Source: Blastocladiella emersonii ATCC 22665 (taxonomy: Eukaryota > Fungi > Blastocladiomycota). From it: a stretch of DNA of 64,000 nucleotides. The position numbers and the translations under genes were made by a program. The notes beneath the pieces were generated by a model that made no database searches, was not told the DNA's origin, and saw only the letters and a program-made list of their open reading frames with translations. This document shows positions 28,062-64,000 of the stretch, in pieces. How positions within the stretch are numbered: the first letter of the stretch is position 1; every line of letters begins with the position of its first letter. The stretch covers positions 1,612,001 to 1,676,000 of the forward strand of contig JANHCV010000009.1 of assembly GCA_025594325.1 (NCBI GenBank), in the 5' to 3' direction.

Positions 28062-28779
28062 GGTCGGGATGCGGAACCTCGAACCACGGTCAAAACCCGC
28101 CTTGGTACTGCACACGACGTGAAGCCGCCGCCGGCCCAAGCAGGTGAACAGGTTGCTGAGCAGCGCGCGTCGTCTTGGAATCGACGAGGAGGATGCGCGT
28201 GGAGATGGTGATGAAAACGGTCATGACGATCTACACACACGACGGGCGAGAATCGTCGTGAGTCAGTCGGTAGGCGATCCCACAGACGAGCATCGGCGCC
28301 GCCGTACCTGCTGCTTCCCGCGATCGAGAGAGCCTCAAGCGCTGCGTTTGAACTTGAACTTGGTGGGTGGGTAACCGGCGTACGGGGTGCCCCCGGTGCA
28401 GCGCGGGCGGCGTTTCTGTACGACGGGTAGTATTTTCAGATCGGTCCAGCCGCTCCGCCAACAGACGCAAGGTCCATGGGCCACTACCCGCCACCTACTC
28501 GGCCGCCACACCGTTTGCCTCCCTTCATTAGCCCCTCCGCACGGCCGAGACCCCCGCCAGCCGCGCCACACACGAGTCCGCTGCAGCATACGTTGGGGCG
28601 AACGAGCGCATGAAGGGGGAGGTGTGGGCGGTGCTTACGCTTTGCTTACGGCGAGGGCTCGTGCCGCAAAGGGCGTGCCGAGGGAGAGAACTAGGCCAGG
28701 AGGGTACTAGGCCCGCACCGGGGGAGGGGCATCTACACGAGGGAGAGCGAGCACGGGCGGTCGCGGCGGGCGACGCGTT

Positions 28780-29950
28780 ACTGGACTCGGGCGTGCGAGC
28801 GTACCCACGACGAGTGCTCGAGCGACGGTTTGGGCACGGCGGCCGTCGCGGCCGCGAGGGCCTTCATGTCGATGAAGAGTGTAACGCTGACCATGAGCTG
28901 ATGATGCTGACGCGCGAGTCGTCGAGTACCGATCCCTCTACAGTCGGCGCGCGAGTGAGTGGTCGGTGGCTTCTGAATGTCCGCGCTATGGCCATGAGCG
29001 CACCCTTGTTGATACTGCCGTCGCCGATGAGATAAACCCGCCGAGCTTGAGCAGCGCGTCTCGTCGAGAGCGTGAGCACGCGCGGCGCCCTCGAGTACTA
29101 GCACTTGACCGGGAAGTTGTGCGACGCATAATCGGCCTGCTGCTGTTGTTTGGACAAACTTGGTGAGCAACTTGATCCGCGCCGCGCCGCGCCGCGAGCC
29201 GAGAACGAGCGCGTTGGAGTCGATGCCGAAACGGCATGCGACGACAGATCGGCTTCGACGGCTGGCTAGCCTTGATGATGGCCGTTGAGAGCGCGAGCCC
29301 GATCCGCCTACACGACCGGGAGCATGAGGTCAGAGCGAGATCAGCGGCACGTGTCTCGGCCGTGACGTCGCCGTACCTGTCGTATTGGCGCACCGCCGAG
29401 CTCGACGTAGCCGTACTTGGTGCCGACTCGAGCAAGTCGAGCCGTGCCACGCGGCTGCCGCGGCGGAACGTGCGACCGAGTCGACGGCGGGTCAGCAGCA
29501 CGAGCTCGACCATGGGCACCATCAGTCGAACTTGTGGATCGACACCCGCGGAGAATCTTCACATGCATGCAATTCGTGAGCCGCGAGCTCACTCCGTGGC
29601 GGGATCATGAGATGAGGTACCTTGGCGCGTAGGCGCGATGCGTTGATGGCCGGACCCGCCCCGCCACGCAGCACGACGTGAACTCGGCCAGATCGTGCGA
29701 CACATCGCGGCGCCCGGTCGCGGTTGCGGTAAAGGCGGCTCCATGGGACGTGTTGCTGGTACGAGGCGCTACCCGAGCGGCCCGTTCTCGACGTTGTTGA
29801 CGAGCGTGCGTGCCGAGAAGCGTGCCCATGACGCGGAACAGCGTGTTGGCGAAGCCGTAGCTCGGGTAGGCGCGAGGTACGACGACAGCTGGATCACGAT
29901 CGCCGAGCTGCTGGACTTGACGTAGCTGGTAGGTACTTCTTAAGCACCGG
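28780..29950 (-). pseudogene. Decayed coding fragments, possibly a membrane protein (mirror 62,642-63,812, +)
   Basis: Short stretches with host codon bias in shifting frames (YVKSSSSAIVIQLSSYL; PSYGFANTLFRVMGTLLG; LMVSVTLFIDMKAL) and a GTACGC donor-like site. Identity unresolved. Confidence 0.3.
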
Positions 29951-30799
29951 ACCGGACCGACGCGCCTACACACGCGCGGTGACCCGACGTTAGCGCCAAG
30001 GCGAGGCAGATCCGAGCCACAACGACGGCTGCGTACCTGGTGTGCGGCGGCGCACTCGTGGTGGCACTGGATCCGGGCTGCCGGCCGAGGCCCTGCCCGT
30101 CGCGTCGCGTCGCGTCGCAAGATGAGATTGATGCATAGGGAGGAGACTGAGGCCCACACGACGTGCACTCCGTGAGCTCTCCGTGAGCGCGATGCAGTCA
30201 GTGTCATTCATGGCTTGATTCGACGCGCAAGAAGGAGCGAAGGTCGCTGGTCACACTCGCCTCCTTGTTTCGCGGTGTTTCGAGTTCCGCGGCGGAACGA
30301 GGGGAGGGAGGGAGGGAGACACGCGGGACGACGACGCGTCGCACCGTCACGTGAGCGTGCGCGAGACAATTTCCCAATTTTCCGGGCACGCGTTTTGGAG
30401 ACACTTGGAGACATTTTTCTCCTTTGCGCCGCCGTCATCGACGATCTTGGAGGGGGACCGCCGACAACATCAAAACGATTAAGCGATGGCGGCGAAGGAC
30501 GACATGTTGTCCGTTCGGTCTCTCGCCCGACCCCCCACCCGCCACCAACTCTCCATGAATCGGTCCCTTGACCCACCGTAACTTGCTGCAATCTTATCTT
30601 CGAGCGCACTATGCTCAACCTCGTCCTAGTCCTGAGCAGCATCGCGCCACTGGTCGGCGGGGACCCGCTGCGCGGTGGGCCAGCGGTTTGTGCGCGGTGC
30701 ATTACGTGTTTCGTCATGCTCGGTCAGTGTTGATTATTGCACGAACTGCGTCTCCGCGAGACGCTGACCTGCCAACACCAACTCGGTCGACGAAGTCGT

Positions 30800-32137
30800 G
30801 TAAAATCGCCGAGTACCGGGCGCTGGTCGAGGCGCACCCGCTGACGGGCGAGCTGGATCATGCGGCCGTGGACCGATCGCCCAAGGGGAGCTGCTGGCTG
30901 GATCACTTGGCCATCTAGAACGCCATTGCCGGACGCGCTCATTACGCTGGCCGAGGACAACTCGATTGGCGTGGTGCGGCCGTCCGACGGGTCGCTGCTG
31001 TGGTGGATCCCGAACCACGCCGAGATCCCGACCGAGCTCGCGTGGCGGGACGACCTTGTCGTCGCTGGGTACCGCCGTGACCACGCGCACGTATGGGGCA
31101 CGCGCGACGGGATTCTGGACTGGTCGGTCGGTCCACAGCAAAAACGGCGCAGCACATCTTGGCCCGGCACCCCATTGGTGCCGCCAAAGGGTCCCCGACG
31201 CCGAGGGACGGCTCGCGCGGCGCGAGTGCACCATCAGGACGGCCGAACGCCAGCAGCGAGCTCGCGGTCCGAACCCGAGCCTGCCACCGCTCGTCGACCC
31301 GTTCCTCGAGCGCAACTGGCGCGCGGTCGCGGCTCACAACGGAAGAGTCGGGTACCGGCACCGACGACACGTACTCGGGCTCGCGCTCGCCGACTGTCGA
31401 CGACCAGCGCGAGCACGCGCACACCCCACCGCCGTCCATCGACCCGTTCCTCGACGCCGCGCAGCAGGTTGAGCGCGGCGAGTACGGTTACGGCGACAGC
31501 GGCAAGCTGATCAGCCCCATCATGTCGAGGCCGCTCAGCCCGGAGCCGATGGTCGGCAAGGTGCGTTTGCGGACGGTCGGGAGCGGGATGTACGCAAATC
31601 ACTGACCTGTCGTCGTGTGTCTCACGTAGTCGCTTGCCGAGCCCCAGCAGCAGCATGGCGACTCGAGCCCGCTGTGGACGAGCACCGAGTCCAACCTGCC
31701 GTCGTCGCCCGCGCCGCGTCCTGCCGACGACCCGCCCCCGTCGCCGCACATTGACCTCGAGCCCGCCGCCACCCTCATGACGGCCGCCGGCACGACCGCC
31801 GAGGCGGCATCGGTCCCGTCGCCCGTCCCGCTGTGCGTACCCGTTCCCATCGCGTCGTAGCTGCAGCCAGAACCAGCCCTGCGCCGCCGCTCGAGCGCGT
31901 CGGCCATCAAGCCTGCGCCAGCGCCGACGCCCGCCATCTCGACGACCGCGACCACGACCGCGGCCGCGTCGTCCAGGCTCACTGCGCTCGGCCAGGACCC
32001 GCTCGACCCGGCCGTCGGCCTCTGGCCGATCCGCGGCGGCCGGCAACAGGCGCGCCAGTCGACGCAGCTTGCCCTCGAGCTCCATCCAGGACCTGACGCG
32101 CGAGGGGGCACGCCATCGACCATCATCTGGTGCGTTA
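30800..32137 (+). pseudogene. WDR7: WDR7/Rabconnectin-3beta-like fragment (central WD repeats plus low-complexity continuation), left copy
   Basis: LITLAEDNSIG..H..LAWRDDLVVAG..VW..GILDWSVG then KTAQHIL after a frameshift near 31,140 follows the WDR7 pattern. Intron 31561-31629 (GTGCGT..actgac..TAG); in-frame TAG 31858-31860. Confidence 0.6.
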
Positions 32138-34453
32138 TCAATTCTCACGGGTCGGACGGTGTTCGTGGATCTCGTCGACGACGTCAGCCGCGTTGACGGA
32201 GACGTACTCGGCAGCCAGCTCCGAGTCCGACGACGAGGGCGACGCGTACGCGGTGGCGGCGGCGGCGGGCTTCTTGGCGGCCGTCGACTTCTTCTTGGAC
32301 TTATTGATGGCGCGGGACGGCGGGGCGGGCGCGACCTCGTGCGCGGGCGCGAGCGGCTCGACGAGGGCGAGGACGGGGGCGAACACGTCGGCGGAGACCG
32401 AGGGTGGCATGAAGGTGCCGTTGAAGAGCAGGGCCGAGCACGACAGCCGGTCGATCGAGGCGGCGCCGCGGATCTCGAAGCCGAACGGGTCCTCGTCCGA
32501 CGAGTCGCTGTCGGAGCACGAGGCGTCGGTCTCGTAGCCGCTCTCGTAGCCGTCGGGCAGGGTCTTGGACATGGTCATAGACGCCTCGATGTCGAGACCG
32601 ACCGTCGGGGTGGTGGGGCGCGAGGCGAGGTCGCTCGCGGGGATCGTGATGCCCGTCGCCAGCGCGACCTCGGCGTCGAGCGCCGCCGCCACCGGCTTGG
32701 TGTTGTTGATGTTGATGTTCTTGGACAGGATGGTCGGCGTCACCGAGCCGATCGACTGCGCGAGACCCGCGTCAGGGGCGAGCTCAGTCGGGGTAGTGGG
32801 GCGCGAGACGGTGTCGCGCGCAGGGGTGTCCTTCGTGGTCGGGAACTGTCCCAGGATCTCGGACTCGGGCACGGTCACCGACTTGATGGTGTCGATGTCG
32901 AGGACCGACAGCTCGAGGACCGAAGCGGGCGAGATGGTGCAGGTCGAGTCGGACGTGGTGGCGGTGGTGCTGCCCGACACGGTCATGTCGTCGTCGTCGG
33001 TCCGGTTGGTCTCGAGGTCTGACTTGAGGTTGGTGGAGTGGTTGGGGCACGCGTCGACGAGGGTCTCGGCGTCCGAGTCGGCGACGGTCGAGTCACACGC
33101 GTCGCACGCGGCGTGGCCATCGAGGAGGTCCGAGTCGCACGCGTCGAGGTCGTCGTGGACGCCCGAGTCGATCTTGGAGGTGGGCCGCGCGTGGCGCAGC
33201 GCGAGCGAGGTGACGAAGCCGAAGACGATGGTCAGGGCGACGATGGTGATGAGGTAGTCGAGTCGAGCGACGGCAACGAGGCCGGTGGTAGTCAGGGCGA
33301 CAAAGTCGGTGGGGAGGAGGGTGCTGGGGATTACAATAATGGAGGAAAGAGCGCGGAGGTACGAGTAGTCGAGTAGGGGGGTGAGAGTCTTGGTGAGCCG
33401 GAGCGTCGGCTCCTTGAGGGCCGAGTACAGGTCGGACAGGGCGGCCGCGGCGTGGCCGGCGGTCAGCGTCGTCGCGACGTGGAGGGCGGGGCTGCATAGC
33501 TTGCCACCGCCCATGGTGATGCAGACGGGTGCGGGTGTAGCGACCCGAGGCGTGGCTGCGGTAGCCGCGACCTTGAGGGCGACCGGCAGCGTCTGGTTCT
33601 TGGCAAAGTCGATGCCCATGGGGCTGGCGCGCGACGCGCACGGGATGTAGTTGTAGTTGTAGTTGGTGCGTGGAGCGAGCGGGCCGCAGGACGAGATGAT
33701 GGTGAAGTCGGTCGGGTTGAGGAAGTCGGTGAAGTCGAGGGTGGCGAGCGAGGTCGCGCCGAAAAAGTCGTAGGACGACGAGACCGCGGTCACGGCGGCC
33801 GCGGCAGTCGAGGTGGCGGTGGTGCGCACATGTTGCGCGTAGTAGTCTGCGATACATGGCCATGGAGTGTGAGTTTCATGGCCATCGAGAGAGAGAGCGA
33901 GCGAGGGGAGGGGCGGCGAAGGGAGGTGAAAGCGGGCCCACGTGGCGCGTCTCCCGGCTTTGAGCGACGCGTCTCGCAGCACACGTCGGCGCGCGACGCG
34001 CCACCCGCGAGCTTGGGGAGAGCCGGGACCACGGGCGATTCCGCGACGAGAGGGAGTAGAGGGTGGAGACGTACCAATCGAGGGCCTGAGGAAGGCCATG
34101 AAGCCGCAGCCCGTGCGGGTCGCGGGGAAGTCGGCCGAGTTGTCGTAGGTGCCGTCGATCGAGTCGGCGGGGTACAGGTTGAAGTCGAACTTGGTCGCGA
34201 TGAAGTCGAAGATGGCGTTTCCGGGAGTAGTAGTCGAGGTTGTCGAGGCCGAGGGCACGAGCGGGGCAGAGGCGCGGGGGCACACCTCGGCGATGAGGTA
34301 GAGGGCGGACGGGTACGCGCACACGGGCGCGGCAGCAGCGGAGGTAGCGGTGGCGGACACGGCGGGGATGGCGAAGGCGGCGGCGCCCTGCATGGTCGAG
34401 AAGAGGGCCATGAGCGCGAGGCCGAGGGCCAGGATGATGGCGATCGGGTCCAT
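32138..34453 (-). CDS. Orphan Thr/Ala/Ser-rich membrane or surface protein (695 aa if intron 33847-34074 is spliced), left copy
   Basis: ATG in accaccATG context, N-terminal hydrophobic segment IAIILALGLALMALF, a second TM-like segment YLITIVALTIVFGFVTSLAL, and an acidic low-complexity tail. Strong host codon bias; no stops or frameshifts. Confidence 0.75.
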   Translation of the reverse strand: MDPIAIILALGLALMALFSTMQGAAAFAIPAVSATATSAAAAPVCAYPSALYLIAEVCPRASAPLVPSASTTSTTTPGNAIFDFIATKFDFNLYPADSIDGTYDNSADFPATRTGCGFMAFLRPSIGTSPPSTPSRRGIARGPGSPQARGWRVARRRVLRDASLKAGRRATWARFHLPSPPLPSLALSLDGHETHTPWPCIADYYAQHVRTTATSTAAAAVTAVSSSYDFFGATSLATLDFTDFLNPTDFTIISSCGPLAPRTNYNYNYIPCASRASPMGIDFAKNQTLPVALKVAATAATPRVATPAPVCITMGGGKLCSPALHVATTLTAGHAAAALSDLYSALKEPTLRLTKTLTPLLDYSYLRALSSIIVIPSTLLPTDFVALTTTGLVAVARLDYLITIVALTIVFGFVTSLALRHARPTSKIDSGVHDDLDACDSDLLDGHAACDACDSTVADSDAETLVDACPNHSTNLKSDLETNRTDDDDMTVSGSTTATTSDSTCTISPASVLELSVLDIDTIKSVTVPESEILGQFPTTKDTPARDTVSRPTTPTELAPDAGLAQSIGSVTPTILSKNININNTKPVAAALDAEVALATGITIPASDLASRPTTPTVGLDIEASMTMSKTLPDGYESGYETDASCSDSDSSDEDPFGFEIRGAASIDRLSCSALLFNGTFMPPSVSADVFAPVLALVEPLAPAHEVAPAPPSRAINKSKKKSTAAKKPAAAATAYASPSSSDSELAAEYVSVNAADVVDEIHEHRPTREN

Positions 34454-37400
34454 GGTGGTGGTAGTCGTGGTCGCGGTGGGCGTTCGGCTGCGTGGCGGGT
34501 ATGAGGTATGGAGTCTGCTACCGAGCGGGGATAGCATGGGGAGAGAAGCGACCGGCTCGCGGGGGCGGGCGCGCTTTTGAGAGGCCGGCCGGGGACGGGG
34601 ACGGATGCGAGTGCCGCGCACGCGAAGAGCAACGATGCACCGGCGACGCGTCGCGCACCGCGTGACGGACGATTGGAGACAACCGCACGTGGCCGCGGTG
34701 CGAGACAGGAGAGACGCGTCGCGGAATCACGCGAGCAGCGCGTGTGTCTCGCGCTCCGTGTCCCGCGGCGCCGTACCGCGTGTAGGCCGAGTCCCTTGGG
34801 TCGAGTCGATGGCACGAGCGACTACGCAAGGTGCGCCCCGGCGGCGAGCAACAGTCGCTGGCTAGCTGGGGAGGTGGAGAAGGGCTCCGGCGCCGCCACG
34901 CACGCGACCGGCACGTCGCCGCCGAGCCTCCCCCGCGTTCCCATGGCCGCCTCAACCGCTGCTGGCGCGATCGGACGTCGCTGCTCCTCTCTCTACAGCA
35001 CCCAAAGCGACTCGTAATCGCACCCGACAGTGCCTGCAACGCGCCGCTGCCGACCCGCACCGCATCTTGGGCCGGTGCAGGAGTCCCGCGGTGCCCTGTG
35101 GCGAGTGCTCCGCGATGGTGGCACCCGCTCCAGACTCTTCCTTGAGCCTTCATGCCGCACTACTGGGCCGTTGGAGCAAGCAGCAGATGGCGACCAAGGT
35201 TGAGGATGTGACTGCCACTGTGAACCTTGAGCGCAGAACCCGCTCGTCGCGCTCGCGAGCTGGCCTTCATCCATCCACATGGCTTCTACATCCTAGTTTC
35301 TCAGCCTTATCATCTACGAGGCTGATTCATCGTCCATTCTCACGATCCCATCCATCCGCGGGGGCGACTGTTTGAGCGCGAGCAGCCGTCCCTCCCTCGC
35401 GGCCGCTGCGAGCGCACGGTGTGGTCCGTCGCCGCGTTTGAACTCGTGCCGCAGAGCGACGGCCCCTGACGGGGCAATCCGGAGACGCGCCCGATGCACC
35501 TTGTCCCAAGCAGGGCAAAGAGCAACGTCACGGGAAGCGCGCCGAAACGCGTCGCGTCGCAGCTTCACGTGGGACGGCTGCTCCGCTTGGTGCCCTCGCT
35601 CGCCGGCGACGTTGCCGACCCGCATCACACTAGACCTGCCCTCTTTATCCCCACCACGGCTTCTCGTGGCTGCCCCACTCGCTGCAATGTATCTTACCGA
35701 CCTTCCCGGCCGTCCTTCTGGACAGGCTCGCTCTCGCGCGCCTTCGCGGTGCCACCACCCCCGCTGGCACTCCGAACCCTCTTCGCTTCTCCGTTATCTC
35801 CCGCTCTAGCGCTTCCCTTGATCGCTTTCTGCACCGTTGCTCGTCTTACTCGTCCTCATGGCGCTCGGTACCGGCGGTGCTCGCCGAGTTGCGCGCGCGG
35901 AGCCCCTTGCGCGAGATCCTCAACATGCAGCCACTTGACGACGCAGAAAGCCTCCCGGCCAACCCCCAAAACGGCACCCGTATCTCACTTGCCGCATCGC
36001 ACGCGGCGTCAATCGAGGATTCCCCGTTGTTTTCTGCCGTCACGCCCCGTGTCAAGCTGACGTGGCCCGCATCCACCTCGACGGAGGTACGACGTACAGG
36101 CTCGCCTCTTGTGTCCTCGGCACGTTTCCTCGCCGAAATATCTCGCTGCACCGACTCCGGCCACGGTCGTCCTACCTCCACTTCCGCGACGCGCCATGGT
36201 CGCCCACCTCGCTTGTTCCGCGCGCGTCGGACGCGTCGCTTGCCGTTTCCCTTCTCGAATGTTGCACCAAGCGCGCCAAGACTCTTTCAGGAGGCGGCCT
36301 CTTATTTTGTTCACCGAACGGACCCGACGGACGTGTTGCTCGTGTGTTCGCGGTCGCCGCGAGGTCCTCGACGTGTGGCAGCCCGACGCGTTTAGAACCG
36401 GTCCGCCTCCTCGCTCTCCTCCCGACCGCTTGTTCGCCACCCACCAACTCTCTCACCCCCGCACACTCCATGCAATGTCATTACCCCATGAACCGAGACC
36501 CGACCCCTCGGTCCGCCTGCACACCACTTCCAGCTGCGGCGCTGCCCCTACGTGTCTCTCGGCACGACCTGGGCGGAGCCCTTGTCGCACTCTGACGCCG
36601 ATAGACGACGCGTCCGGGCAGGGTCTTCGTCGCCCGATGCGGCGTGGGCGCGGACATACGCAGGCATTCGAGTCGTCTCCGCGGCGGCCACACCGAAAGA
36701 AGGTGTGGTCCTCCTGCTGCGAGCCTAGCGAATCCACCACTTGTTGTTCCCGTGTGCTCTTCGTTCCCGGCGGGTCGCGATAGCTCGTCCATTGTCCATC
36801 GGGGGTGCCGAGCCGGAGCAGCCTTGGCAGTGAAGGAAATAAGCTGCCCTGGCGGGATCTCAGCGGACGGTGGTGGGGGTTTCGTGCCGCGCACGTTTTC
36901 ACTTGGATTATTGCACCTCCTCCCTCTTTTCACTTCGCATCAACGTGCCGGGTCTCGGTTTCGGTGCGTACCCTGCCTCGCGCGGTCCTCCTCGATGACC
37001 GGGTGACGTACCCGCTAGAGGGATCCGCGCGGAGCGCGTGGGTGCGCCTTGTGGTACGTATCATGGGTACGTGCGCTTTGGTTCCACCCTCCGTGGTCGC
37101 GCGGAGCAGTGTATCGCTACTTTATGATCCCTGGCCCTCGGGGCGGGGCAACTGGCTCCGCTGGGAGAATATGTTGCTAGCATTATGCTCTCTGTCTTTC
37201 GCTTCCCGTGTGTCCTCTCTCCAAACTCGAACTCAATCGCATCCTCGGCGACTCACACACAGCCCTCCCTGAGCGACGCGTTGTGTAACGCACTGGGTGC
37301 CGCCGTGCTGAGCCGAGCCCAGAACGTCGCCGACCAGCGACGATCCGCCAGCAAGCGACCATCGACTTCTATAGCGTATCAGCGCGTTCGAAAGAGGGCC

Positions 37401-37766
37401 ACCGAAGCCCCTTGGAGCGAAGATAGGAAGCACCGAGGAGGCGCGCGGGACAACCGGAAAGCACCGACCGCGTTGCGCCACTCAGCGGAGCTCACCTGAC
37501 CGGACTTGACCAGCCCCTCTGTGAACGCGCCGCTCCGCGTCTCGCGCTCCCGGACAACAGCTAATGCGCTGCCTCAATCGCCATGGACGCTTCCGCACAA
37601 CATGCAATGAATCACCCGCAATCCACTCTTGCAATTTTACCCATCAAACGTCGTCACTCGCGTCCTGCAGTTCGCAACGCCGCGGCCCACCGTCACCGCC
37701 GCCGCGTCGGCGCTCCTCGCTGCAGGTGCGCGTGAGCGGTACACGCATGCCTCCTGAACCTGCGCC

Positions 37767-39389
37767 TTGGTCTGCCGATATCTCGCGGCGGCCGGTGTCC
37801 CCAACAAGTTTGACCTCCTTTCGATCCCGTGGTCCGCGGACAGCGTCGAGCCGACCCACGAGCTTGTTGCCGTGCACCTCTCAACTCTGCTTCTTCGCCG
37901 CATCTCCCCTGAGGACGCGTCCAATGCCGGAACACGTCTAGCCGGTCACGTTGCTATATCAGTACGGAACGCTTCGAGCCGCGCACTCCCGACTGCTTTG
38001 TCAGGCCGTGGCACTTGACTATGGCGAGCTCTTGATGCGCCTCATGGGTCGCGCCATGGCTCTCCACCCTCCTCATCTCCTTGGCCATTCGCATGTTGAA
38101 ACTATTTATTGGCTCCTGGTCGTCGAGGATGCAATTCATGCGCTTCAACCACGACGATTTGTACCAAGGTTCAGTGTGACACTTCCCGAGTTCCTCGCCT
38201 TTCTCGATTGTACGTTCGCAAATACCCGGCCCCTCGCGCTCCTCCTTGGCGACCGCGACTTTCAGGCGAGCGAAGCGCGCGTCGCCGAAACTTTGGGCAC
38301 CGAGTTCTCACCGCAGACGGTCACGGCCCATTTCCGCGTCGCTGCGCCCGGAAGCTCCGAGCTTGATGTGCGGACAGTGGACGTGCTTGCTCTCGCTCCC
38401 TCAGATCCTGATGGCGTGGCGGCGCCTGTCCGCGCACGGTACGCTGACTTTGCCGTCGAGTCGGGCCCGCTGTTCTTCCGCCTGCTGATTGTGCGGCTTG
38501 CTGGTCAGTACAGACTACCGCCTTGGAACCACCGTTGCTCAATCCGGTGGTCGGCAAGGACATTCGCAAGAACTTGATGAAGCTGATCGCTGAGTGTGTT
38601 CCGGTCGCAGACCTTGAGATCTGGGACTCGTGCGGCGTCATGGACCGCGAACTTTGGGGCTTCGCGCTTGCCACCGTTGTGACGCGGGCTGATGTCGAGT
38701 ATATCAAACAGCTCTGTGGCCGTTCGCCAGCGGAGTGGAAGCAGCTCAACTCGACGGTCCGGGTTGAGGTGCTGAGTCTAACCAGGCGCAGCGTGTTGTT
38801 CACTTTGCGCTTGAGTCCGGTGACCAGCCCGCTCCCGACTTGGCCGGCCTCGTGCGGGCTTCCATCGGCCTGCATCCGAAGCGCGTCATGCGCGCGTTAC
38901 GTGTCGAAGATCTCATACTCGACCTCGTACAGCTACTTGCGCTGCTTGTCCCGCATTACGACCAGTTCCAAGGCGACGGTCATCGCTACATAGCGTCTCC
39001 GACTTTTGCTTACCTGATCATGGCCGCGATGACAGGCCTCGCGACCCGAAGCCGTGTGCTCAATGCGATTTAGCGTTTGTCGCTCCGAAACACAATCGTG
39101 AAGATCATGATCAACTCGGGTGACGCGGACTGCCCAATCTCAGCTCAAGCTCAACATGACCGACATTGACATCTGCACGAAATGCCCCCTCGCCGCACAG
39201 GGGCTGTTCTGCGACGCACTCGCGCTGGACCTAGAAGCCATGCCGGATGCGCTTCGCGGGTTTCTGCATGACGTAAGTACTTTCGGCTTCGCTTCAGTCG
39301 GCACGCCGGAACCGAAGCCCATAGAAATCCGCGCCAGAACAGCTGTGACTGTGCAGTCGTTCGGGCTCGCCGGACGGCTTCTGTTCTAA
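37767..39389 (+). pseudogene. Frameshifted lineage-specific gene, left copy
   Basis: Five consecutive same-strand ORFs in shifting frames, four of them overlapping (37767, 37951, 38523, 38840, 39120), with protein-like composition. No family recognised. Confidence 0.45.
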
Positions 39390-39479
39390 GCAGCCCCGGC
39401 GCTTGCTGCCGAGCTTCCTCGAACGGCACAGCTCAGTTGGAGTCTGGGCGCTTCTGCCAGCCGCTGGCATCAAAGAGAT

Positions 39480-40038: not shown

Positions 40039-40149
40039 CGTTTTGGCGAGGTTGAATGGATTCCGGATAGATTGTTGTTGACCACGGTGGCCGTAGTAGT
40101 CGCCGCGCTCCTCAGAGCGATCGAACGCAAAGTGGAATGGATGGAGTGA

Positions 40150-40229
40150 AAAGTGTCTCGCACCCGCCGCGTGACTGAGGCGCAAGCCACTACGCGTCTT
40201 CACCTCGCGCATATCAAAGTGTCTCGCAC
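40150..40229. promoter_or_regulatory. Two direct copies of aaagtgtctcgcac (40150-40163 and 40216-40229); mirrored at 52,363-52,442
   Basis: Exact 14-mer repeated 66 bp apart, about 0.55 kb upstream of the 427-aa gene. A regulatory role is inferred. Confidence 0.35.
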
Positions 40230-52553: not shown

Positions 52554-53112
52554 TCAGATCCAGAACCGGACGCGGCTGCCGCCCTCGGCCAGCTCGATGG
52601 TGTGTGCTCGGACACGGCGAGCTGTACCATCCATCCACCCGCTCGCCGCGCTTGAACCGGACGGGCTCGCGTACGCGAACGCCTTGACCTCCTTGAGCGA
52701 GTTGCCGCCCGCCACCGCGCCGACGAGGTGCATGAGCCCCAACGGCGGCGACCACACCTCGACCGCTGCCGCGGTGTCCCCCGAGCGCGGCGTTGACCAC
52801 GCTGCGCCCGTCGGGCGTGAACGCGACCGCCGACGACACGGGCATGCTGCGCGAGTGTGCGTCAATGACGTGCAGGCGCGTGGCCGTGCGCAGGTCCCAC
52901 ACCACGACGCGGCCGTCGGCCCCGCCCGTCACGAGCTGCTGCACTGCGGCCTGGAAGGCGACCACGGGGAACCGCCGCACCATCTCGAACAGCGTCTCCG
53001 CCGCCGTCGCCGGCTGCGGCAGCACGTCACGCTGCAACGCGTGCACCGGGCCGAGTTTCTGCCGCCACGGCCTCGGTTAGCCGCGCCGCCCTGCCCGACT
53101 CGCGCGCGGTTC
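52554..53112 (-). pseudogene. WDR7: WDR7-like C-terminal fragment, right-arm copy
   Basis: Mirror of 39,480-40,038. Confidence 0.7.
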
Positions 53113-53202
53113 ATCTCTTTGATGCCAGCGGCTGGCAGAAGCGCCCAGACTCCAACTGAGCTGTGCCGTTCGAGGAAGCTCGGCAGCAAGCGCCGGGGCT
53201 GC

Positions 53203-54825
53203 TTAGAACAGAAGCCGTCCGGCGAGCCCGAACGACTGCACAGTCACAGCTGTTCTGGCGCGGATTTCTATGGGCTTCGGTTCCGGCGTGCCGACTGAAG
53301 CGAAGCCGAAAGTACTTACGTCATGCAGAAACCCGCGAAGCGCATCCGGCATGGCTTCTAGGTCCAGCGCGAGTGCGTCGCAGAACAGCCCCTGTGCGGC
53401 GAGGGGGCATTTCGTGCAGATGTCAATGTCGGTCATGTTGAGCTTGAGCTGAGATTGGGCAGTCCGCGTCACCCGAGTTGATCATGATCTTCACGATTGT
53501 GTTTCGGAGCGACAAACGCTAAATCGCATTGAGCACACGGCTTCGGGTCGCGAGGCCTGTCATCGCGGCCATGATCAGGTAAGCAAAAGTCGGAGACGCT
53601 ATGTAGCGATGACCGTCGCCTTGGAACTGGTCGTAATGCGGGACAAGCAGCGCAAGTAGCTGTACGAGGTCGAGTATGAGATCTTCGACACGTAACGCGC
53701 GCATGACGCGCTTCGGATGCAGGCCGATGGAAGCCCGCACGAGGCCGGCCAAGTCGGGAGCGGGCTGGTCACCGGACTCAAGCGCAAAGTGAACAACACG
53801 CTGCGCCTGGTTAGACTCAGCACCTCAACCCGGACCGTCGAGTTGAGCTGCTTCCACTCCGCTGGCGAACGGCCACAGAGCTGTTTGATATACTCGACAT
53901 CAGCCCGCGTCACAACGGTGGCAAGCGCGAAGCCCCAAAGTTCGCGGTCCATGACGCCGCACGAGTCCCAGATCTCAAGGTCTGCGACCGGAACACACTC
54001 AGCGATCAGCTTCATCAAGTTCTTGCGAATGTCCTTGCCGACCACCGGATTGAGCAACGGTGGTTCCAAGGCGGTAGTCTGTACTGACCAGCAAGCCGCA
54101 CAATCAGCAGGCGGAAGAACAGCGGGCCCGACTCGACGGCAAAGTCAGCGTACCGTGCGCGGACAGGCGCCGCCACGCCATCAGGATCTGAGGGAGCGAG
54201 AGCAAGCACGTCCACTGTCCGCACATCAAGCTCGGAGCTTCCGGGCGCAGCGACGCGGAAATGGGCCGTGACCGTCTGCGGTGAGAACTCGGTGCCCAAA
54301 GTTTCGGCGACGCGCGCTTCGCTCGCCTGAAAGTCGCGGTCGCCAAGGAGGAGCGCGAGGGGCCGGGTATTTGCGAACGTACAATCGAGAAAGGCGAGGA
54401 ACTCGGGAAGTGTCACACTGAACCTTGGTACAAATCGTCGTGGTTGAAGCGCATGAATTGCATCCTCGACGACCAGGAGCCAATAAATAGTTTCAACATG
54501 CGAATGGCCAAGGAGATGAGGAGGGTGGAGAGCCATGGCGCGACCCATGAGGCGCATCAAGAGCTCGCCATAGTCAAGTGCCACGGCCTGACAAAGCAGT
54601 CGGGAGTGCGCGGCTCGAAGCGTTCCGTACTGATATAGCAACGTGACCGGCTAGACGTGTTCCGGCATTGGACGCGTCCTCAGGGGAGATGCGGCGAAGA
54701 AGCAGAGTTGAGAGGTGCACGGCAACAAGCTCGTGGGTCGGCTCGACGCTGTCCGCGGACCACGGGATCGAAAGGAGGTCAAACTTGTTGGGGACACCGG
54801 CCGCCGCGAGATATCGGCAGACCAA
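53203..54825 (-). pseudogene. Frameshifted lineage-specific gene, right-arm copy
   Basis: Mirror of 37,767-39,389. Confidence 0.45.
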
Positions 54826-57800
54826 GGCGCAGGTTCAGGAGGCATGCGTGTACCGCTCACGCGCACCTGCAGCGAGGAGCGCCGACGCGGCGGCGGTGAC
54901 GGTGGGCCGCGGCGTTGCGAACTGCAGGACGCGAGTGACGACGTTTGATGGGTAAAATTGCAAGAGTGGATTGCGGGTGATTCATTGCATGTTGTGCGGA
55001 AGCGTCCATGGCGATTGAGGCAGCGCATTAGCTGTTGTCCGGGAGCGCGAGACGCGGAGCGGCGCGTTCACAGAGGGGCTGGTCAAGTCCGGTCAGGTGA
55101 GCTCCGCTGAGTGGCGCAACGCGGTCGGTGCTTTCCGGTTGTCCCGCGCGCCTCCTCGGTGCTTCCTATCTTCGCTCCAAGGGGCTTCGGTGGCCCTCTT
55201 TCGAACGCGCTGATACGCTATAGAAGTCGATGGTCGCTTGCTGGCGGATCGTCGCTGGTCGGCGACGTTCTGGGCTCGGCTCAGCACGGCGGCACCCAGT
55301 GCGTTACACAACGCGTCGCTCAGGGAGGGCTGTGTGTGAGTCGCCGAGGATGCGATTGAGTTCGAGTTTGGAGAGAGGACACACGGGAAGCGAAAGACAG
55401 AGAGCATAATGCTAGCAACATATTCTCCCAGCGGAGCCAGTTGCCCCGCCCCGAGGGCCAGGGATCATAAAGTAGCGATACACTGCTCCGCGCGACCACG
55501 GAGGGTGGAACCAAAGCGCACGTACCCATGATACGTACCACAAGGCGCACCCACGCGCTCCGCGCGGATCCCTCTAGCGGGTACGTCACCCGGTCATCGA
55601 GGAGGACCGCGCGAGGCAGGGTACGCACCGAAACCGAGACCCGGCACGTTGATGCGAAGTGAAAAGAGGGAGGAGGTGCAATAATCCAAGTGAAAACGTG
55701 CGCGGCACGAAACCCCCACCACCGTCCGCTGAGATCCCGCCAGGGCAGCTTATTTCCTTCACTGCCAAGGCTGCTCCGGCTCGGCACCCCCGATGGACAA
55801 TGGACGAGCTATCGCGACCCGCCGGGAACGAAGAGCACACGGGAACAACAAGTGGTGGATTCGCTAGGCTCGCAGCAGGAGGACCACACCTTCTTTCGGT
55901 GTGGCCGCCGCGGAGACGACTCGAATGCCTGCGTATGTCCGCGCCCACGCCGCATCGGGCGACGAAGACCCTGCCCGGACGCGTCGTCTATCGGCGTCAG
56001 AGTGCGACAAGGGCTCCGCCCAGGTCGTGCCGAGAGACACGTAGGGGCAGCGCCGCAGCTGGAAGTGGTGTGCAGGCGGACCGAGGGGTCGGGTCTCGGT
56101 TCATGGGGTAATGACATTGCATGGAGTGTGCGGGGGTGAGAGAGTTGGTGGGTGGCGAACAAGCGGTCGGGAGGAGAGCGAGGAGGCGGACCGGTTCTAA
56201 ACGCGTCGGGCTGCCACACGTCGAGGACCTCGCGGCGACCGCGAACACACGAGCAACACGTCCGTCGGGTCCGTTCGGTGAACAAAATAAGAGGCCGCCT
56301 CCTGAAAGAGTCTTGGCGCGCTTGGTGCAACATTCGAGAAGGGAAACGGCAAGCGACGCGTCCGACGCGCGCGGAACAAGCGAGGTGGGCGACCATGGCG
56401 CGTCGCGGAAGTGGAGGTAGGACGACCGTGGCCGGAGTCGGTGCAGCGAGATATTTCGGCGAGGAAACGTGCCGAGGACACAAGAGGCGAGCCTGTACGT
56501 CGTACCTCCGTCGAGGTGGATGCGGGCCACGTCAGCTTGACACGGGGCGTGACGGCAGAAAACAACGGGGAATCCTCGATTGACGCCGCGTGCGATGCGG
56601 CAAGTGAGATACGGGTGCCGTTTTGGGGGTTGGCCGGGAGGCTTTCTGCGTCGTCAAGTGGCTGCATGTTGAGGATCTCGCGCAAGGGGCTCCGCGCGCG
56701 CAACTCGGCGAGCACCGCCGGTACCGAGCGCCATGAGGACGAGTAAGACGAGCAACGGTGCAGAAAGCGATCAAGGGAAGCGCTAGAGCGGGAGATAACG
56801 GAGAAGCGAAGAGGGTTCGGAGTGCCAGCGGGGGTGGTGGCACCGCGAAGGCGCGCGAGAGCGAGCCTGTCCAGAAGGACGGCCGGGAAGGTCGGTAAGA
56901 TACATTGCAGCGAGTGGGGCAGCCACGAGAAGCCGTGGTGGGGATAAAGAGGGCAGGTCTAGTGTGATGCGGGTCGGCAACGTCGCCGGCGAGCGAGGGC
57001 ACCAAGCGGAGCAGCCGTCCCACGTGAAGCTGCGACGCGACGCGTTTCGGCGCGCTTCCCGTGACGTTGCTCTTTGCCCTGCTTGGGACAAGGTGCATCG
57101 GGCGCGTCTCCGGATTGCCCCGTCAGGGGCCGTCGCTCTGCGGCACGAGTTCAAACGCGGCGACGGACCACACCGTGCGCTCGCAGCGGCCGCGAGGGAG
57201 GGACGGCTGCTCGCGCTCAAACAGTCGCCCCCGCGGATGGATGGGATCGTGAGAATGGACGATGAATCAGCCTCGTAGATGATAAGGCTGAGAAACTAGG
57301 ATGTAGAAGCCATGTGGATGGATGAAGGCCAGCTCGCGAGCGCGACGAGCGGGTTCTGCGCTCAAGGTTCACAGTGGCAGTCACATCCTCAACCTTGGTC
57401 GCCATCTGCTGCTTGCTCCAACGGCCCAGTAGTGCGGCATGAAGGCTCAAGGAAGAGTCTGGAGCGGGTGCCACCATCGCGGAGCACTCGCCACAGGGCA
57501 CCGCGGGACTCCTGCACCGGCCCAAGATGCGGTGCGGGTCGGCAGCGGCGCGTTGCAGGCACTGTCGGGTGCGATTACGAGTCGCTTTGGGTGCTGTAGA
57601 GAGAGGAGCAGCGACGTCCGATCGCGCCAGCAGCGGTTGAGGCGGCCATGGGAACGCGGGGGAGGCTCGGCGGCGACGTGCCGGTCGCGTGCGTGGCGGC
57701 GCCGGAGCCCTTCTCCACCTCCCCAGCTAGCCAGCGACTGTTGCTCGCCGCCGGGGCGCACCTTGCGTAGTCGCTCGTGCCATCGACTCGACCCAAGGGA

Positions 57801-58138
57801 CTCGGCCTACACGCGGTACGGCGCCGCGGGACACGGAGCGCGAGACACACGCGCTGCTCGCGTGATTCCGCGACGCGTCTCTCCTGTCTCGCACCGCGGC
57901 CACGTGCGGTTGTCTCCAATCGTCCGTCACGCGGTGCGCGACGCGTCGCCGGTGCATCGTTGCTCTTCGCGTGCGCGGCACTCGCATCCGTCCCCGTCCC
58001 CGGCCGGCCTCTCAAAAGCGCGCCCGCCCCCGCGAGCCGGTCGCTTCTCTCCCCATGCTATCCCCGCTCGGTAGCAGACTCCATACCTCATACCCGCCAC
58101 GCAGCCGAACGCCCACCGCGACCACGACTACCACCACC

Positions 58139-60454
58139 ATGGACCCGATCGCCATCATCCTGGCCCTCGGCCTCGCGCTCATGGCCCTCTTCTCGACCAT
58201 GCAGGGCGCCGCCGCCTTCGCCATCCCCGCCGTGTCCGCCACCGCTACCTCCGCTGCTGCCGCGCCCGTGTGCGCGTACCCGTCCGCCCTCTACCTCATC
58301 GCCGAGGTGTGCCCCCGCGCCTCTGCCCCGCTCGTGCCCTCGGCCTCGACAACCTCGACTACTACTCCCGGAAACGCCATCTTCGACTTCATCGCGACCA
58401 AGTTCGACTTCAACCTGTACCCCGCCGACTCGATCGACGGCACCTACGACAACTCGGCCGACTTCCCCGCGACCCGCACGGGCTGCGGCTTCATGGCCTT
58501 CCTCAGGCCCTCGATTGGTACGTCTCCACCCTCTACTCCCTCTCGTCGCGGAATCGCCCGTGGTCCCGGCTCTCCCCAAGCTCGCGGGTGGCGCGTCGCG
58601 CGCCGACGTGTGCTGCGAGACGCGTCGCTCAAAGCCGGGAGACGCGCCACGTGGGCCCGCTTTCACCTCCCTTCGCCGCCCCTCCCCTCGCTCGCTCTCT
58701 CTCTCGATGGCCATGAAACTCACACTCCATGGCCATGTATCGCAGACTACTACGCGCAACATGTGCGCACCACCGCCACCTCGACTGCCGCGGCCGCCGT
58801 GACCGCGGTCTCGTCGTCCTACGACTTTTTCGGCGCGACCTCGCTCGCCACCCTCGACTTCACCGACTTCCTCAACCCGACCGACTTCACCATCATCTCG
58901 TCCTGCGGCCCGCTCGCTCCACGCACCAACTACAACTACAACTACATCCCGTGCGCGTCGCGCGCCAGCCCCATGGGCATCGACTTTGCCAAGAACCAGA
59001 CGCTGCCGGTCGCCCTCAAGGTCGCGGCTACCGCAGCCACGCCTCGGGTCGCTACACCCGCACCCGTCTGCATCACCATGGGCGGTGGCAAGCTATGCAG
59101 CCCCGCCCTCCACGTCGCGACGACGCTGACCGCCGGCCACGCCGCGGCCGCCCTGTCCGACCTGTACTCGGCCCTCAAGGAGCCGACGCTCCGGCTCACC
59201 AAGACTCTCACCCCCCTACTCGACTACTCGTACCTCCGCGCTCTTTCCTCCATTATTGTAATCCCCAGCACCCTCCTCCCCACCGACTTTGTCGCCCTGA
59301 CTACCACCGGCCTCGTTGCCGTCGCTCGACTCGACTACCTCATCACCATCGTCGCCCTGACCATCGTCTTCGGCTTCGTCACCTCGCTCGCGCTGCGCCA
59401 CGCGCGGCCCACCTCCAAGATCGACTCGGGCGTCCACGACGACCTCGACGCGTGCGACTCGGACCTCCTCGATGGCCACGCCGCGTGCGACGCGTGTGAC
59501 TCGACCGTCGCCGACTCGGACGCCGAGACCCTCGTCGACGCGTGCCCCAACCACTCCACCAACCTCAAGTCAGACCTCGAGACCAACCGGACCGACGACG
59601 ACGACATGACCGTGTCGGGCAGCACCACCGCCACCACGTCCGACTCGACCTGCACCATCTCGCCCGCTTCGGTCCTCGAGCTGTCGGTCCTCGACATCGA
59701 CACCATCAAGTCGGTGACCGTGCCCGAGTCCGAGATCCTGGGACAGTTCCCGACCACGAAGGACACCCCTGCGCGCGACACCGTCTCGCGCCCCACTACC
59801 CCGACTGAGCTCGCCCCTGACGCGGGTCTCGCGCAGTCGATCGGCTCGGTGACGCCGACCATCCTGTCCAAGAACATCAACATCAACAACACCAAGCCGG
59901 TGGCGGCGGCGCTCGACGCCGAGGTCGCGCTGGCGACGGGCATCACGATCCCCGCGAGCGACCTCGCCTCGCGCCCCACCACCCCGACGGTCGGTCTCGA
60001 CATCGAGGCGTCTATGACCATGTCCAAGACCCTGCCCGACGGCTACGAGAGCGGCTACGAGACCGACGCCTCGTGCTCCGACAGCGACTCGTCGGACGAG
60101 GACCCGTTCGGCTTCGAGATCCGCGGCGCCGCCTCGATCGACCGGCTGTCGTGCTCGGCCCTGCTCTTCAACGGCACCTTCATGCCACCCTCGGTCTCCG
60201 CCGACGTGTTCGCCCCCGTCCTCGCCCTCGTCGAGCCGCTCGCGCCCGCGCACGAGGTCGCGCCCGCCCCGCCGTCCCGCGCCATCAATAAGTCCAAGAA
60301 GAAGTCGACGGCCGCCAAGAAGCCCGCCGCCGCCGCCACCGCGTACGCGTCGCCCTCGTCGTCGGACTCGGAGCTGGCTGCCGAGTACGTCTCCGTCAAC
60401 GCGGCTGACGTCGTCGACGAGATCCACGAACACCGTCCGACCCGTGAGAATTGA
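58139..60454 (+). CDS. Same orphan membrane protein, right-arm copy (intron 58518-58745)
   Basis: Mirror of 32,138-34,453. GTACGT donor at 58518 and CAG acceptor at 58745, phase 1 on both sides. Confidence 0.75.
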   Translation: MDPIAIILALGLALMALFSTMQGAAAFAIPAVSATATSAAAAPVCAYPSALYLIAEVCPRASAPLVPSASTTSTTTPGNAIFDFIATKFDFNLYPADSIDGTYDNSADFPATRTGCGFMAFLRPSIGTSPPSTPSRRGIARGPGSPQARGWRVARRRVLRDASLKAGRRATWARFHLPSPPLPSLALSLDGHETHTPWPCIADYYAQHVRTTATSTAAAAVTAVSSSYDFFGATSLATLDFTDFLNPTDFTIISSCGPLAPRTNYNYNYIPCASRASPMGIDFAKNQTLPVALKVAATAATPRVATPAPVCITMGGGKLCSPALHVATTLTAGHAAAALSDLYSALKEPTLRLTKTLTPLLDYSYLRALSSIIVIPSTLLPTDFVALTTTGLVAVARLDYLITIVALTIVFGFVTSLALRHARPTSKIDSGVHDDLDACDSDLLDGHAACDACDSTVADSDAETLVDACPNHSTNLKSDLETNRTDDDDMTVSGSTTATTSDSTCTISPASVLELSVLDIDTIKSVTVPESEILGQFPTTKDTPARDTVSRPTTPTELAPDAGLAQSIGSVTPTILSKNININNTKPVAAALDAEVALATGITIPASDLASRPTTPTVGLDIEASMTMSKTLPDGYESGYETDASCSDSDSSDEDPFGFEIRGAASIDRLSCSALLFNGTFMPPSVSADVFAPVLALVEPLAPAHEVAPAPPSRAINKSKKKSTAAKKPAAAATAYASPSSSDSELAAEYVSVNAADVVDEIHEHRPTREN

Positions 60455-61792
60455 TAACGCACCAGATGATGGTCGATGGCGTGCCCCCTCGCGCGTCAGG
60501 TCCTGGATGGAGCTCGAGGGCAAGCTGCGTCGACTGGCGCGCCTGTTGCCGGCCGCCGCGGATCGGCCAGAGGCCGACGGCCGGGTCGAGCGGGTCCTGG
60601 CCGAGCGCAGTGAGCCTGGACGACGCGGCCGCGGTCGTGGTCGCGGTCGTCGAGATGGCGGGCGTCGGCGCTGGCGCAGGCTTGATGGCCGACGCGCTCG
60701 AGCGGCGGCGCAGGGCTGGTTCTGGCTGCAGCTACGACGCGATGGGAACGGGTACGCACAGCGGGACGGGCGACGGGACCGATGCCGCCTCGGCGGTCGT
60801 GCCGGCGGCCGTCATGAGGGTGGCGGCGGGCTCGAGGTCAATGTGCGGCGACGGGGGCGGGTCGTCGGCAGGACGCGGCGCGGGCGACGACGGCAGGTTG
60901 GACTCGGTGCTCGTCCACAGCGGGCTCGAGTCGCCATGCTGCTGCTGGGGCTCGGCAAGCGACTACGTGAGACACACGACGACAGGTCAGTGATTTGCGT
61001 ACATCCCGCTCCCGACCGTCCGCAAACGCACCTTGCCGACCATCGGCTCCGGGCTGAGCGGCCTCGACATGATGGGGCTGATCAGCTTGCCGCTGTCGCC
61101 GTAACCGTACTCGCCGCGCTCAACCTGCTGCGCGGCGTCGAGGAACGGGTCGATGGACGGCGGTGGGGTGTGCGCGTGCTCGCGCTGGTCGTCGACAGTC
61201 GGCGAGCGCGAGCCCGAGTACGTGTCGTCGGTGCCGGTACCCGACTCTTCCGTTGTGAGCCGCGACCGCGCGCCAGTTGCGCTCGAGGAACGGGTCGACG
61301 AGCGGTGGCAGGCTCGGGTTCGGACCGCGAGCTCGCTGCTGGCGTTCGGCCGTCCTGATGGTGCACTCGCGCCGCGCGAGCCGTCCCTCGGCGTCGGGGA
61401 CCCTTTGGCGGCACCAATGGGGTGCCGGGCCAAGATGTGCTGCGCCGTTTTTGCTGTGGACCGACCGACCAGTCCAGAATCCCGTCGCGCGTGCCCCATA
61501 CGTGCGCGTGGTCACGGCGGTACCCAGCGACGACAAGGTCGTCCCGCCACGCGAGCTCGGTCGGGATCTCGGCGTGGTTCGGGATCCACCACAGCAGCGA
61601 CCCGTCGGACGGCCGCACCACGCCAATCGAGTTGTCCTCGGCCAGCGTAATGAGCGCGTCCGGCAATGGCGTTCTAGATGGCCAAGTGATCCAGCCAGCA
61701 GCTCCCCTTGGGCGATCGGTCCACGGCCGCATGATCCAGCTCGCCCGTCAGCGGGTGCGCCTCGACCAGCGCCCGGTACTCGGCGATTTTAC
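60455..61792 (-). pseudogene. WDR7: WDR7-like central fragment, right-arm copy
   Basis: Mirror of 30,800-32,137 with the same lesions. Confidence 0.6.
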
Positions 61793-64000
61793 ACGACTTC
61801 GTCGACCGAGTTGGTGTTGGCAGGTCAGCGTCTCGCGGAGACGCAGTTCGTGCAATAATCAACACTGACCGAGCATGACGAAACACGTAATGCACCGCGC
61901 ACAAACCGCTGGCCCACCGCGCAGCGGGTCCCCGCCGACCAGTGGCGCGATGCTGCTCAGGACTAGGACGAGGTTGAGCATAGTGCGCTCGAAGATAAGA
62001 TTGCAGCAAGTTACGGTGGGTCAAGGGACCGATTCATGGAGAGTTGGTGGCGGGTGGGGGGTCGGGCGAGAGACCGAACGGACAACATGTCGTCCTTCGC
62101 CGCCATCGCTTAATCGTTTTGATGTTGTCGGCGGTCCCCCTCCAAGATCGTCGATGACGGCGGCGCAAAGGAGAAAAATGTCTCCAAGTGTCTCCAAAAC
62201 GCGTGCCCGGAAAATTGGGAAATTGTCTCGCGCACGCTCACGTGACGGTGCGACGCGTCGTCGTCCCGCGTGTCTCCCTCCCTCCCTCCCCTCGTTCCGC
62301 CGCGGAACTCGAAACACCGCGAAACAAGGAGGCGAGTGTGACCAGCGACCTTCGCTCCTTCTTGCGCGTCGAATCAAGCCATGAATGACACTGACTGCAT
62401 CGCGCTCACGGAGAGCTCACGGAGTGCACGTCGTGTGGGCCTCAGTCTCCTCCCTATGCATCAATCTCATCTTGCGACGCGACGCGACGCGACGGGCAGG
62501 GCCTCGGCCGGCAGCCCGGATCCAGTGCCACCACGAGTGCGCCGCCGCACACCAGGTACGCAGCCGTCGTTGTGGCTCGGATCTGCCTCGCCTTGGCGCT
62601 AACGTCGGGTCACCGCGCGTGTGTAGGCGCGTCGGTCCGGTCCGGTGCTTAAGAAGTACCTACCAGCTACGTCAAGTCCAGCAGCTCGGCGATCGTGATC
62701 CAGCTGTCGTCGTACCTCGCGCCTACCCGAGCTACGGCTTCGCCAACACGCTGTTCCGCGTCATGGGCACGCTTCTCGGCACGCACGCTCGTCAACAACG
62801 TCGAGAACGGGCCGCTCGGGTAGCGCCTCGTACCAGCAACACGTCCCATGGAGCCGCCTTTACCGCAACCGCGACCGGGCGCCGCGATGTGTCGCACGAT
62901 CTGGCCGAGTTCACGTCGTGCTGCGTGGCGGGGCGGGTCCGGCCATCAACGCATCGCGCCTACGCGCCAAGGTACCTCATCTCATGATCCCGCCACGGAG
63001 TGAGCTCGCGGCTCACGAATTGCATGCATGTGAAGATTCTCCGCGGGTGTCGATCCACAAGTTCGACTGATGGTGCCCATGGTCGAGCTCGTGCTGCTGA
63101 CCCGCCGTCGACTCGGTCGCACGTTCCGCCGCGGCAGCCGCGTGGCACGGCTCGACTTGCTCGAGTCGGCACCAAGTACGGCTACGTCGAGCTCGGCGGT
63201 GCGCCAATACGACAGGTACGGCGACGTCACGGCCGAGACACGTGCCGCTGATCTCGCTCTGACCTCATGCTCCCGGTCGTGTAGGCGGATCGGGCTCGCG
63301 CTCTCAACGGCCATCATCAAGGCTAGCCAGCCGTCGAAGCCGATCTGTCGTCGCATGCCGTTTCGGCATCGACTCCAACGCGCTCGTTCTCGGCTCGCGG
63401 CGCGGCGCGGCGCGGATCAAGTTGCTCACCAAGTTTGTCCAAACAACAGCAGCAGGCCGATTATGCGTCGCACAACTTCCCGGTCAAGTGCTAGTACTCG
63501 AGGGCGCCGCGCGTGCTCACGCTCTCGACGAGACGCGCTGCTCAAGCTCGGCGGGTTTATCTCATCGGCGACGGCAGTATCAACAAGGGTGCGCTCATGG
63601 CCATAGCGCGGACATTCAGAAGCCACCGACCACTCACTCGCGCGCCGACTGTAGAGGGATCGGTACTCGACGACTCGCGCGTCAGCATCATCAGCTCATG
63701 GTCAGCGTTACACTCTTCATCGACATGAAGGCCCTCGCGGCCGCGACGGCCGCCGTGCCCAAACCGTCGCTCGAGCACTCGTCGTGGGTACGCTCGCACG
63801 CCCGAGTCCAGTAACGCGTCGCCCGCCGCGACCGCCCGTGCTCGCTCTCCCTCGTGTAGATGCCCCTCCCCCGGTGCGGGCCTAGTACCCTCCTGGCCTA
63901 GTTCTCTCCCTCGGCACGCCCTTTGCGGCACGAGCCCTCGCCGTAAGCAAAGCGTAAGCACCGCCCACACCTCCCCCTTCATGCGCTCGTTCGCCCCAAC

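Follow-up and report, generated by a model that had tools for sequence, protein, structure and literature searches.

On mammalian sex chromosomes, near-perfect palindromes of tens of kilobases have been studied in depth; in the nuclear genomes of fungi, to my knowledge, reports of them are rare. Large repeats of the same general kind are also familiar from small circles: in the chloroplast inverted repeat (arms of ~25 kb) and the yeast 2-micron plasmid, recombination keeps the repeats identical and permits flip-flop inversion of the segment between them. Here I describe a large gene-bearing palindrome in the early-diverging fungus Blastocladiella emersonii ATCC 22665, found in a window of 64,000 nt (the whole stretch of DNA that was analysed, positions 1,612,001 to 1,676,000 of contig JANHCV010000009.1). 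All coordinates are window positions, and the position in the record is the window position plus 1,612,000. The palindrome is physically present in the genome, with both inner junctions and a 2:1 ratio of arm to spacer depth in contigs from sequencing runs, and it probably descends from an old inverted duplication whose arms have been held identical by arm-to-arm gene conversion.

The palindromes of mammalian sex chromosomes (P1-P8 of the human Y, and those of the X) carry genes, and the likeness of their arms is put down to arm-to-arm conversion (PMC6790999; Rozen et al. 2003 via PMC5490193). The B. emersonii locus resembles them in its large inverted arms that are more than 99.9% identical, its unique spacer and the genes within it. 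The mammalian examples, however, belong to animal sex chromosomes, hold mostly testis-expressed genes and have had conversion shown by cross-species comparison, whereas the present palindrome belongs to an early-diverging fungus, in which its contig is an ordinary one, holds an ABCC transporter gene and points to conversion through the contrast between flanks and arms alone. Amplification of SUL1 in yeast, by fold-back or origin-dependent inverted-repeat amplification (ODIRA), offers another parallel, in which a spaced inverted duplicate increases transporter gene dosage (PMC10766186). ODIRA leads to inverted triplications with junctions at inverted repeats of ~5 nt that lie 40-80 nt apart, and secondary rearrangements can extend the spacer of palindromic amplicons (PMC10766186). 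In B. emersonii, by contrast, there are two copies and a spacer of 5.96 kb, and the diverged homology found beyond the arms speaks for an old structure. The arms are similar in size to those of the chloroplast inverted repeat but, unlike that repeat and the 2-micron plasmid with their small multicopy circles, they occupy a locus on a nuclear chromosome with ordinary depth. Finally, the Folsomia candida study describes 11 palindromes in that asexual animal and cites 17 in Adineta vaga, gene-bearing and discussed as substrates of conversion; those of Folsomia are without concerted evolution (PMC5490193). The B. emersonii arms differ from both in being 99.988% identical and checked against reads.

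A repeat search within the window returned a single inverted pair, at 28592-43314 and 49278-64000, 5,963 nt apart, and base-by-base comparison of these in-window arms gave 14,721 identical bases of 14,723. The left arm seems to start at 28592 only because the window stops at the mirror position, 64000 (28592 + 64000 = 43314 + 49278). When the two loci were fetched beyond the window and compared position by position, the full arms proved to be 17967-43314 (left, forward strand) and 49278-74625 (right, reverse strand), the latter running past the window end at 64000 to record position 1,686,625. Each arm is 25,348 nt long and the whole palindrome spans 56,659 bp. The initial annotation had reported a near-perfect palindrome with a 5.96-kb spacer, which both comparisons bear out, and arms of at least 14.7 kb, which is sound as a lower bound; the start that it gave for the left arm was an effect of the window edge, and the real arms measure 25.3 kb. 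Between them lies an asymmetric, single-copy spacer of 5,963 nt (43315-49277). The outer boundaries are sharp on both sides (17967, mirrored at 74625), and the palindrome is interstitial rather than terminal, since the contig continues for ~55.7 kb past the right arm.

At the level of the assembly the arms agree at 25,345 of 25,348 positions (99.988%, a divergence of 0.012%), an identity over such a length that cannot have arisen by chance. The three differences (19175|73417, 43290|49302 and 43303|49289, left arm and right arm respectively) are all transitions, none of them farther than 1.2 kb from the end of its arm. Two of them fall within 25 nt of the inner end: the left-arm inner edge (43290-43314) has C/T at 43290 and T/C at 43303, and the right-arm inner edge (49278-49302) has the corresponding variants at 49302 and 49289, next to the right inner junction at 49277|49278. 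By my own arithmetic, the probability that two of three uniformly placed differences would fall within the inner 25 nt is ~3e-6. The last 11 nt of the inner ends match perfectly, and there the match breaks off abruptly. No complementarity was found past the inner arm ends, and no inverted homology between the two spacer ends exceeded shuffled controls. As in palindromes of the Y type, then, inverted arms flank a unique, non-palindromic spacer, and identity is at least 99.9% over kilobases at the level of the assembly, with reads covering ~1.5 kb.

For the assembly (GCA_025594325.1), the La Jolla Assembler (LJA) was run on PacBio HiFi reads averaging 10.5 kb and the result was purged and polished with 65-nt Illumina reads; whole-genome amplification is absent from the described methods (PMC9730499). 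Four public runs from one sample, here X1 to X4, contain the sequence; their contigs, built from 31-letter words and with depth expressed as word depth, were placed on 44800-50799. A contig of X1 at 48287-49332 (depth 30.1) crosses the right inner junction, and an arm contig at 49303-49877 stands at depth 66.8, a ratio of 2.2. The junction contig of X2 has the same ends (depth 109.8) and its arm contig, 49303-50071, a depth of 231.9, a ratio of 2.1. In X3 the junction is crossed by a single contig (48471-50071, depth 8.79) that reaches 794 nt into the arm and allows no ratio. The junction contigs of X1 and X2 include the first 55 nt of the arm, agree with the assembly throughout and stop exactly 30 nt beyond the arm-specific variant at 49302, the shared-arm contig beginning at 49303; a break at this place is what 31-letter words would be expected to give, and the arm-specific variants are therefore real. 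In X1, moreover, one of the contigs on the arm carries at 49278 a loose end whose letters are those of 43315-43344 in reverse complement, which places the left inner junction in the reads as well. The remaining unique contigs of the spacer have depths of 26-32 in X1 and 104-111 in X2. If X1 is the Illumina library of the genome paper, as it appears to be, 2.2 Gb of 65-nt reads over 34.27 Mb allow a word depth of at most ~34x; a spacer depth of 30 would thus be full single-copy depth, and the arms would be present in two copies per genome. A chimera of assembly or amplification, one of the readings offered by the initial annotation, is rejected on these grounds, and the depth comparison that it had proposed (arms at about twice the spacer) gave that very outcome in both X1 and X2.

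Some further features of the runs deserve mention. At 50724 (mirror 41868) the sole covering contigs of X1, X2 and X3 read G where the assembly has A, which could be a discrepancy of assembly or polishing, a concealed difference between the arms, or a paralogous copy. Contigs of X4 retain 454 adaptor B and loxP-linker sequence at loose ends (45700, 45990, 46965 and 46994); this marks X4 as a 454 paired-end library whose adaptors were left in place, and the runs mix technologies. Run contigs total 26.7 Mb in X1 and 28.7 Mb in X2 against an assembly of 34.27 Mb, a shortfall for which several Mb of exact repeats collapsing in the word graph, or filtering and uneven coverage, are possible reasons.

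What speaks to the age of the palindrome is found just outside it. Two blocks of inverted homology continue beyond the outer boundaries. Block 1 joins 17837-17908 on the left to ~75190-75264 on the right in a gapped alignment of ~72 nt (local score 60, where shuffles reached 36 at most), with a 30-mer core that blastn matches at 29 of 30 positions (E = 6e-8) and that contains TGACTCA. Block 2 joins 17935-17966 to 74776-74807 with 26 of 32 positions identical, a score reached by none of 500 shuffles. It abuts the boundary of the left arm but stands 150 nt off that of the right arm. The two blocks are collinear and oriented as the palindrome is, the right flank having extra sequence of ~150 nt and ~356 nt, and it is exactly at the 150-nt indel that perfect arm identity ends on the outer side. 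Over ~100 alignable nucleotides of this one genome, the flank remnants are thus ~80% identical and broken by indels, as against 99.988% within the arms. No additional flank-to-flank homology was found, tblastx giving compositional noise only.

The TGACTCA 30-mer (an AP-1/Yap-like site) lies upstream of both copies of the ABCC gene, at 17837-17866 and ~75235-75264, which is 120 nt from the ATG of the left copy and 629 nt from that of the right, in surroundings that have diverged. It may be a conserved promoter element. That 30 nt have persisted where the sequence around them can no longer be aligned suggests selection on both promoters, in which case both copies would be in use.

Flanks that are ~20% diverged and broken by indels, beside 25 kb with three differences, should exclude a single recent duplication, and I consider it probable that this real chromosomal palindrome is of old origin and homogenised by conversion. 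An old inverted duplication would have captured the ABCC gene with ~130 nt of its promoter, the neighbouring GNAT gene and several orphans, after which intrachromosomal gene conversion between the arms would have maintained their identity. Heterology would have blocked conversion, so that perfect identity halts inwardly where the spacer begins and outwardly where the 150-nt indel lies; past the indel, the promoter-proximal remnants would have drifted until ~80% of their positions agreed. Two old differences may survive in the 25 nt next to the spacer because conversion tract ends would seldom reach the boundary. Crossover between the arms, inverting the spacer, is likely, with a risk of dicentric formation; the orientation of the spacer in the assembly is arbitrary because the reads are too short to span a 25-kb arm.

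Several points weigh against this account. The flank homology is based on ~100 alignable nucleotides, and conversion is deduced from the contrast between flanks and arms within one strain. The outer 1.2 kb of the arms is identical up to the boundary, so that the edge effect is seen at the inner end alone. The read-level check spans ~1.5 kb of one arm, the 2:1 depth ratio is set against the spacer alone with contigs within 44800-50799, and the spacer depth of 110 in X2 is below the mean coverage of ~190 given in the genome paper, if X2 is the HiFi run, as its year suggests. Furthermore, LJA assembly followed by Illumina polishing (with Pilon) could have over-homogenised the arms.

How else might such arms have come about? 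In the main rival account, an old, short inverted duplicate of the ABCC 5' end could have served as the site of invasion for break-induced replication that ran inward for 25 kb and finished in a non-homologous joint at 49277|49278, so that one recent copying event made the arms and no ongoing conversion is needed. This would explain why old homology is found on the outer side alone and none on the inner side. The outermost mismatch, 1.2 kb inside its arm, could then be left over from a heteroduplex, the pair within 25 nt of the inner joint could reflect error-prone synthesis near a template switch, and the logic is similar to that of human duplication-triplication/inversion-duplication (DUP-TRP/INV-DUP) rearrangements (PMC10766186). 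I nevertheless regard it as unlikely, flank homology of ~80% being a poor substrate for strand invasion. If the inverted duplication instead arose de novo and very recently, through fold-back priming, ODIRA or a template switch in replication, identity would simply mean youth. Such an origin agrees with an arm divergence of 0.012% and with the sharp inner junctions, where the perfect 11-nt match could have been microhomology, and a gain in transporter dosage is a classic outcome of palindromic amplification (PMC10766186). The diverged, collinear and indel-broken homology beyond the outer boundary, however, needs longer than three differences per 25 kb allow. A fold-back or ODIRA amplicon would have its junctions at short inverted repeats tens of bases apart, whereas here the spacer is 5,963 nt and the arm ends show no further complementarity; an inverted triplication would have a depth of 3x, whereas the arms stand at 2.1-2.2 times the spacer with two copies on the contig; and by my own estimate a pre-existing 25-nt inverted repeat with two mismatches would occur within 6 kb by chance with a probability of ~4e-5. 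This explanation, which the initial annotation had also put forward, is disfavoured by the outer homology in particular and strikes me as distinctly improbable.

The remaining alternative is that the structure is an artefact of assembly, polishing or library construction, such as a long-read assembly fold-back or a chimera in amplified DNA. Arms of 25 kb exceed the HiFi reads, no read covers an arm, and the runs all derive from one sample. Palindromes in the draft genome of Adineta vaga were, moreover, reportedly ascribed to assembly error later on. Such a chimera would be expected to lack its junctions in reads and to have arms of single-copy depth, whereas in the run contigs both inner junctions are found across three separate runs and the ratio of arm to spacer holds in two runs of very unequal depth. 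The methods as described are without amplification of the whole genome, and the structure is interstitial with differing, gene-bearing flanks, so that an artefact is scarcely credible. A palindrome maintained by conversion is the best supported of the three readings in the initial annotation, its conversion step being drawn from the contrast between flanks and arms.

As for gene content, the effect of the palindrome is that every arm gene exists in two intact copies. The largest encodes an ABCC/MRP-type ABC transporter of 1729 aa (17986-23386, forward strand; mirror 69206-74606, reverse strand) with Pfam matches to ABC_membrane and ABC_tran, whose closest solved relatives are MRP1, ABCC2 and Ycf1. 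The left arm starts 19 nt upstream of its ATG, both copies are called as intact 1729-aa genes, and the sole difference within the gene (19175|73417) falls at a third codon position (CGT/CGC). Next to it is a single-exon GNAT acetyltransferase of 253 aa (24115-24876, forward; mirror 67716-68477, reverse; Pfam Acetyltransf_3), the exact protein being encoded twice on the contig. Gene calls further give a 263-aa gene of no family (30555-31860, forward; mirror 60732-62037, reverse), a 695-aa orphan (32138-34453, reverse; mirror 58139-60454, forward) inside an 827-aa open reading frame (ORF) with a third-position GC of 0.87, and an intronless 427-aa orphan (40743-42026, forward; mirror 50566-51849, reverse), and precomputed Pfam matches mark a 129-aa fragment of a WD40 beta-propeller (39609-40038, forward; mirror 52554-52983, reverse). 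The sequence-identical copies of the 263-aa gene are modelled differently, the second as 262 aa at 60732-62088 with another start; this is an inconsistency of annotation, not a biological difference. Neither the 695-aa gene and its 827-aa ORF nor the 427-aa orphan has a Pfam match, and Atlas searches with them returned only low-scoring noise.

Pfam searches found no transposase, integrase or reverse transcriptase domain in the scanned ORFs of at least 150 aa from the arms and spacer, nor did precomputed Pfam matches in the called genes, so that the initial annotation's statement that there is no transposase or integrase here holds for all ORFs scanned, and a transposon-borne inverted repeat or composite element lacks the domains that would mark it. 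Collections of plasmids and phages gave no match, nor did tRNA and Rfam scans.

The spacer carries two called genes, both on the reverse strand, of 528 aa (43962-45868) and 313 aa (47882-49110). The segment at 45506-46024 resembles a piece of a dispersed repeat family: its run contigs rise to ~3-3.4x the single-copy spacer depth and depart from the assembly at 6-9 positions. Candidate gene remnants at the junctions, a "Cch1-like channel" on the right and an "RNase H" on the left, were unsupported by Pfam or by a PDB sequence search even at E = 10, and were not used to judge the ancestral junction. An in silico fusion between the spacer end and the right flank restored no reading frame.

Outside the palindrome, gene families in the flanks include a P5-type ATPase, DUF4246 and DUF4470. 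The ATPase, DUF4246 and ABCC genes indicate a fungus, and the ATPase matches a protein of B. emersonii ATCC 22665 at 99%, so that a bacterial, archaeal or viral source was rejected; exact-protein look-ups assign the window to contig JANHCV010000009.1, which is 1,742,282 bp long. The P5-type ATPase gene lies to the left and is single copy, and on the right are a 7tm_1 receptor, a thioredoxin, a B-box zinc-finger gene and a gene of 1053 aa. The neighbourhoods of the ABCC orthologues in Catenaria and B. britannica resemble neither flank, and the loci are not syntenic. A 684-aa gene in the left flank (7747-10195, forward strand) has a precomputed Pfam match to Glyco_hydro_46 (chitosanase), a family that is mainly bacterial and viral, and its horizontal acquisition is possible.

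The words "palindrome" and "inverted" are absent from the B. emersonii genome paper (PMC9730499), and a full-text literature search was likewise empty. The locus is most likely an old, conversion-homogenised palindrome in an unexpected organism, and it provides a read-checked case of inverted repeats of 25 kb being tolerated, and probably homogenised, by B. emersonii. Users of this genome should also be cautious, for the arm genes, including the MRP-type transporter, form identical pairs that short reads are unable to tell apart. I would raise, tentatively and as the less probable case, that the B. emersonii genome contains dozens of two-tier palindromes with genes, of which this locus would be a single example, with identical cores set in older, diverged inverted homology and continually homogenised by conversion. 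If so, a fungus without a known sexual cycle would keep pairs of genes intact on a genome-wide scale in the manner of a Y chromosome; alternatively, the genome-wide pattern could reflect break repair that is unusually biased to inverted duplication. Were such a pattern true, B. emersonii would be a tractable microbial system for the formation of palindromes, their upkeep by conversion and their stability.

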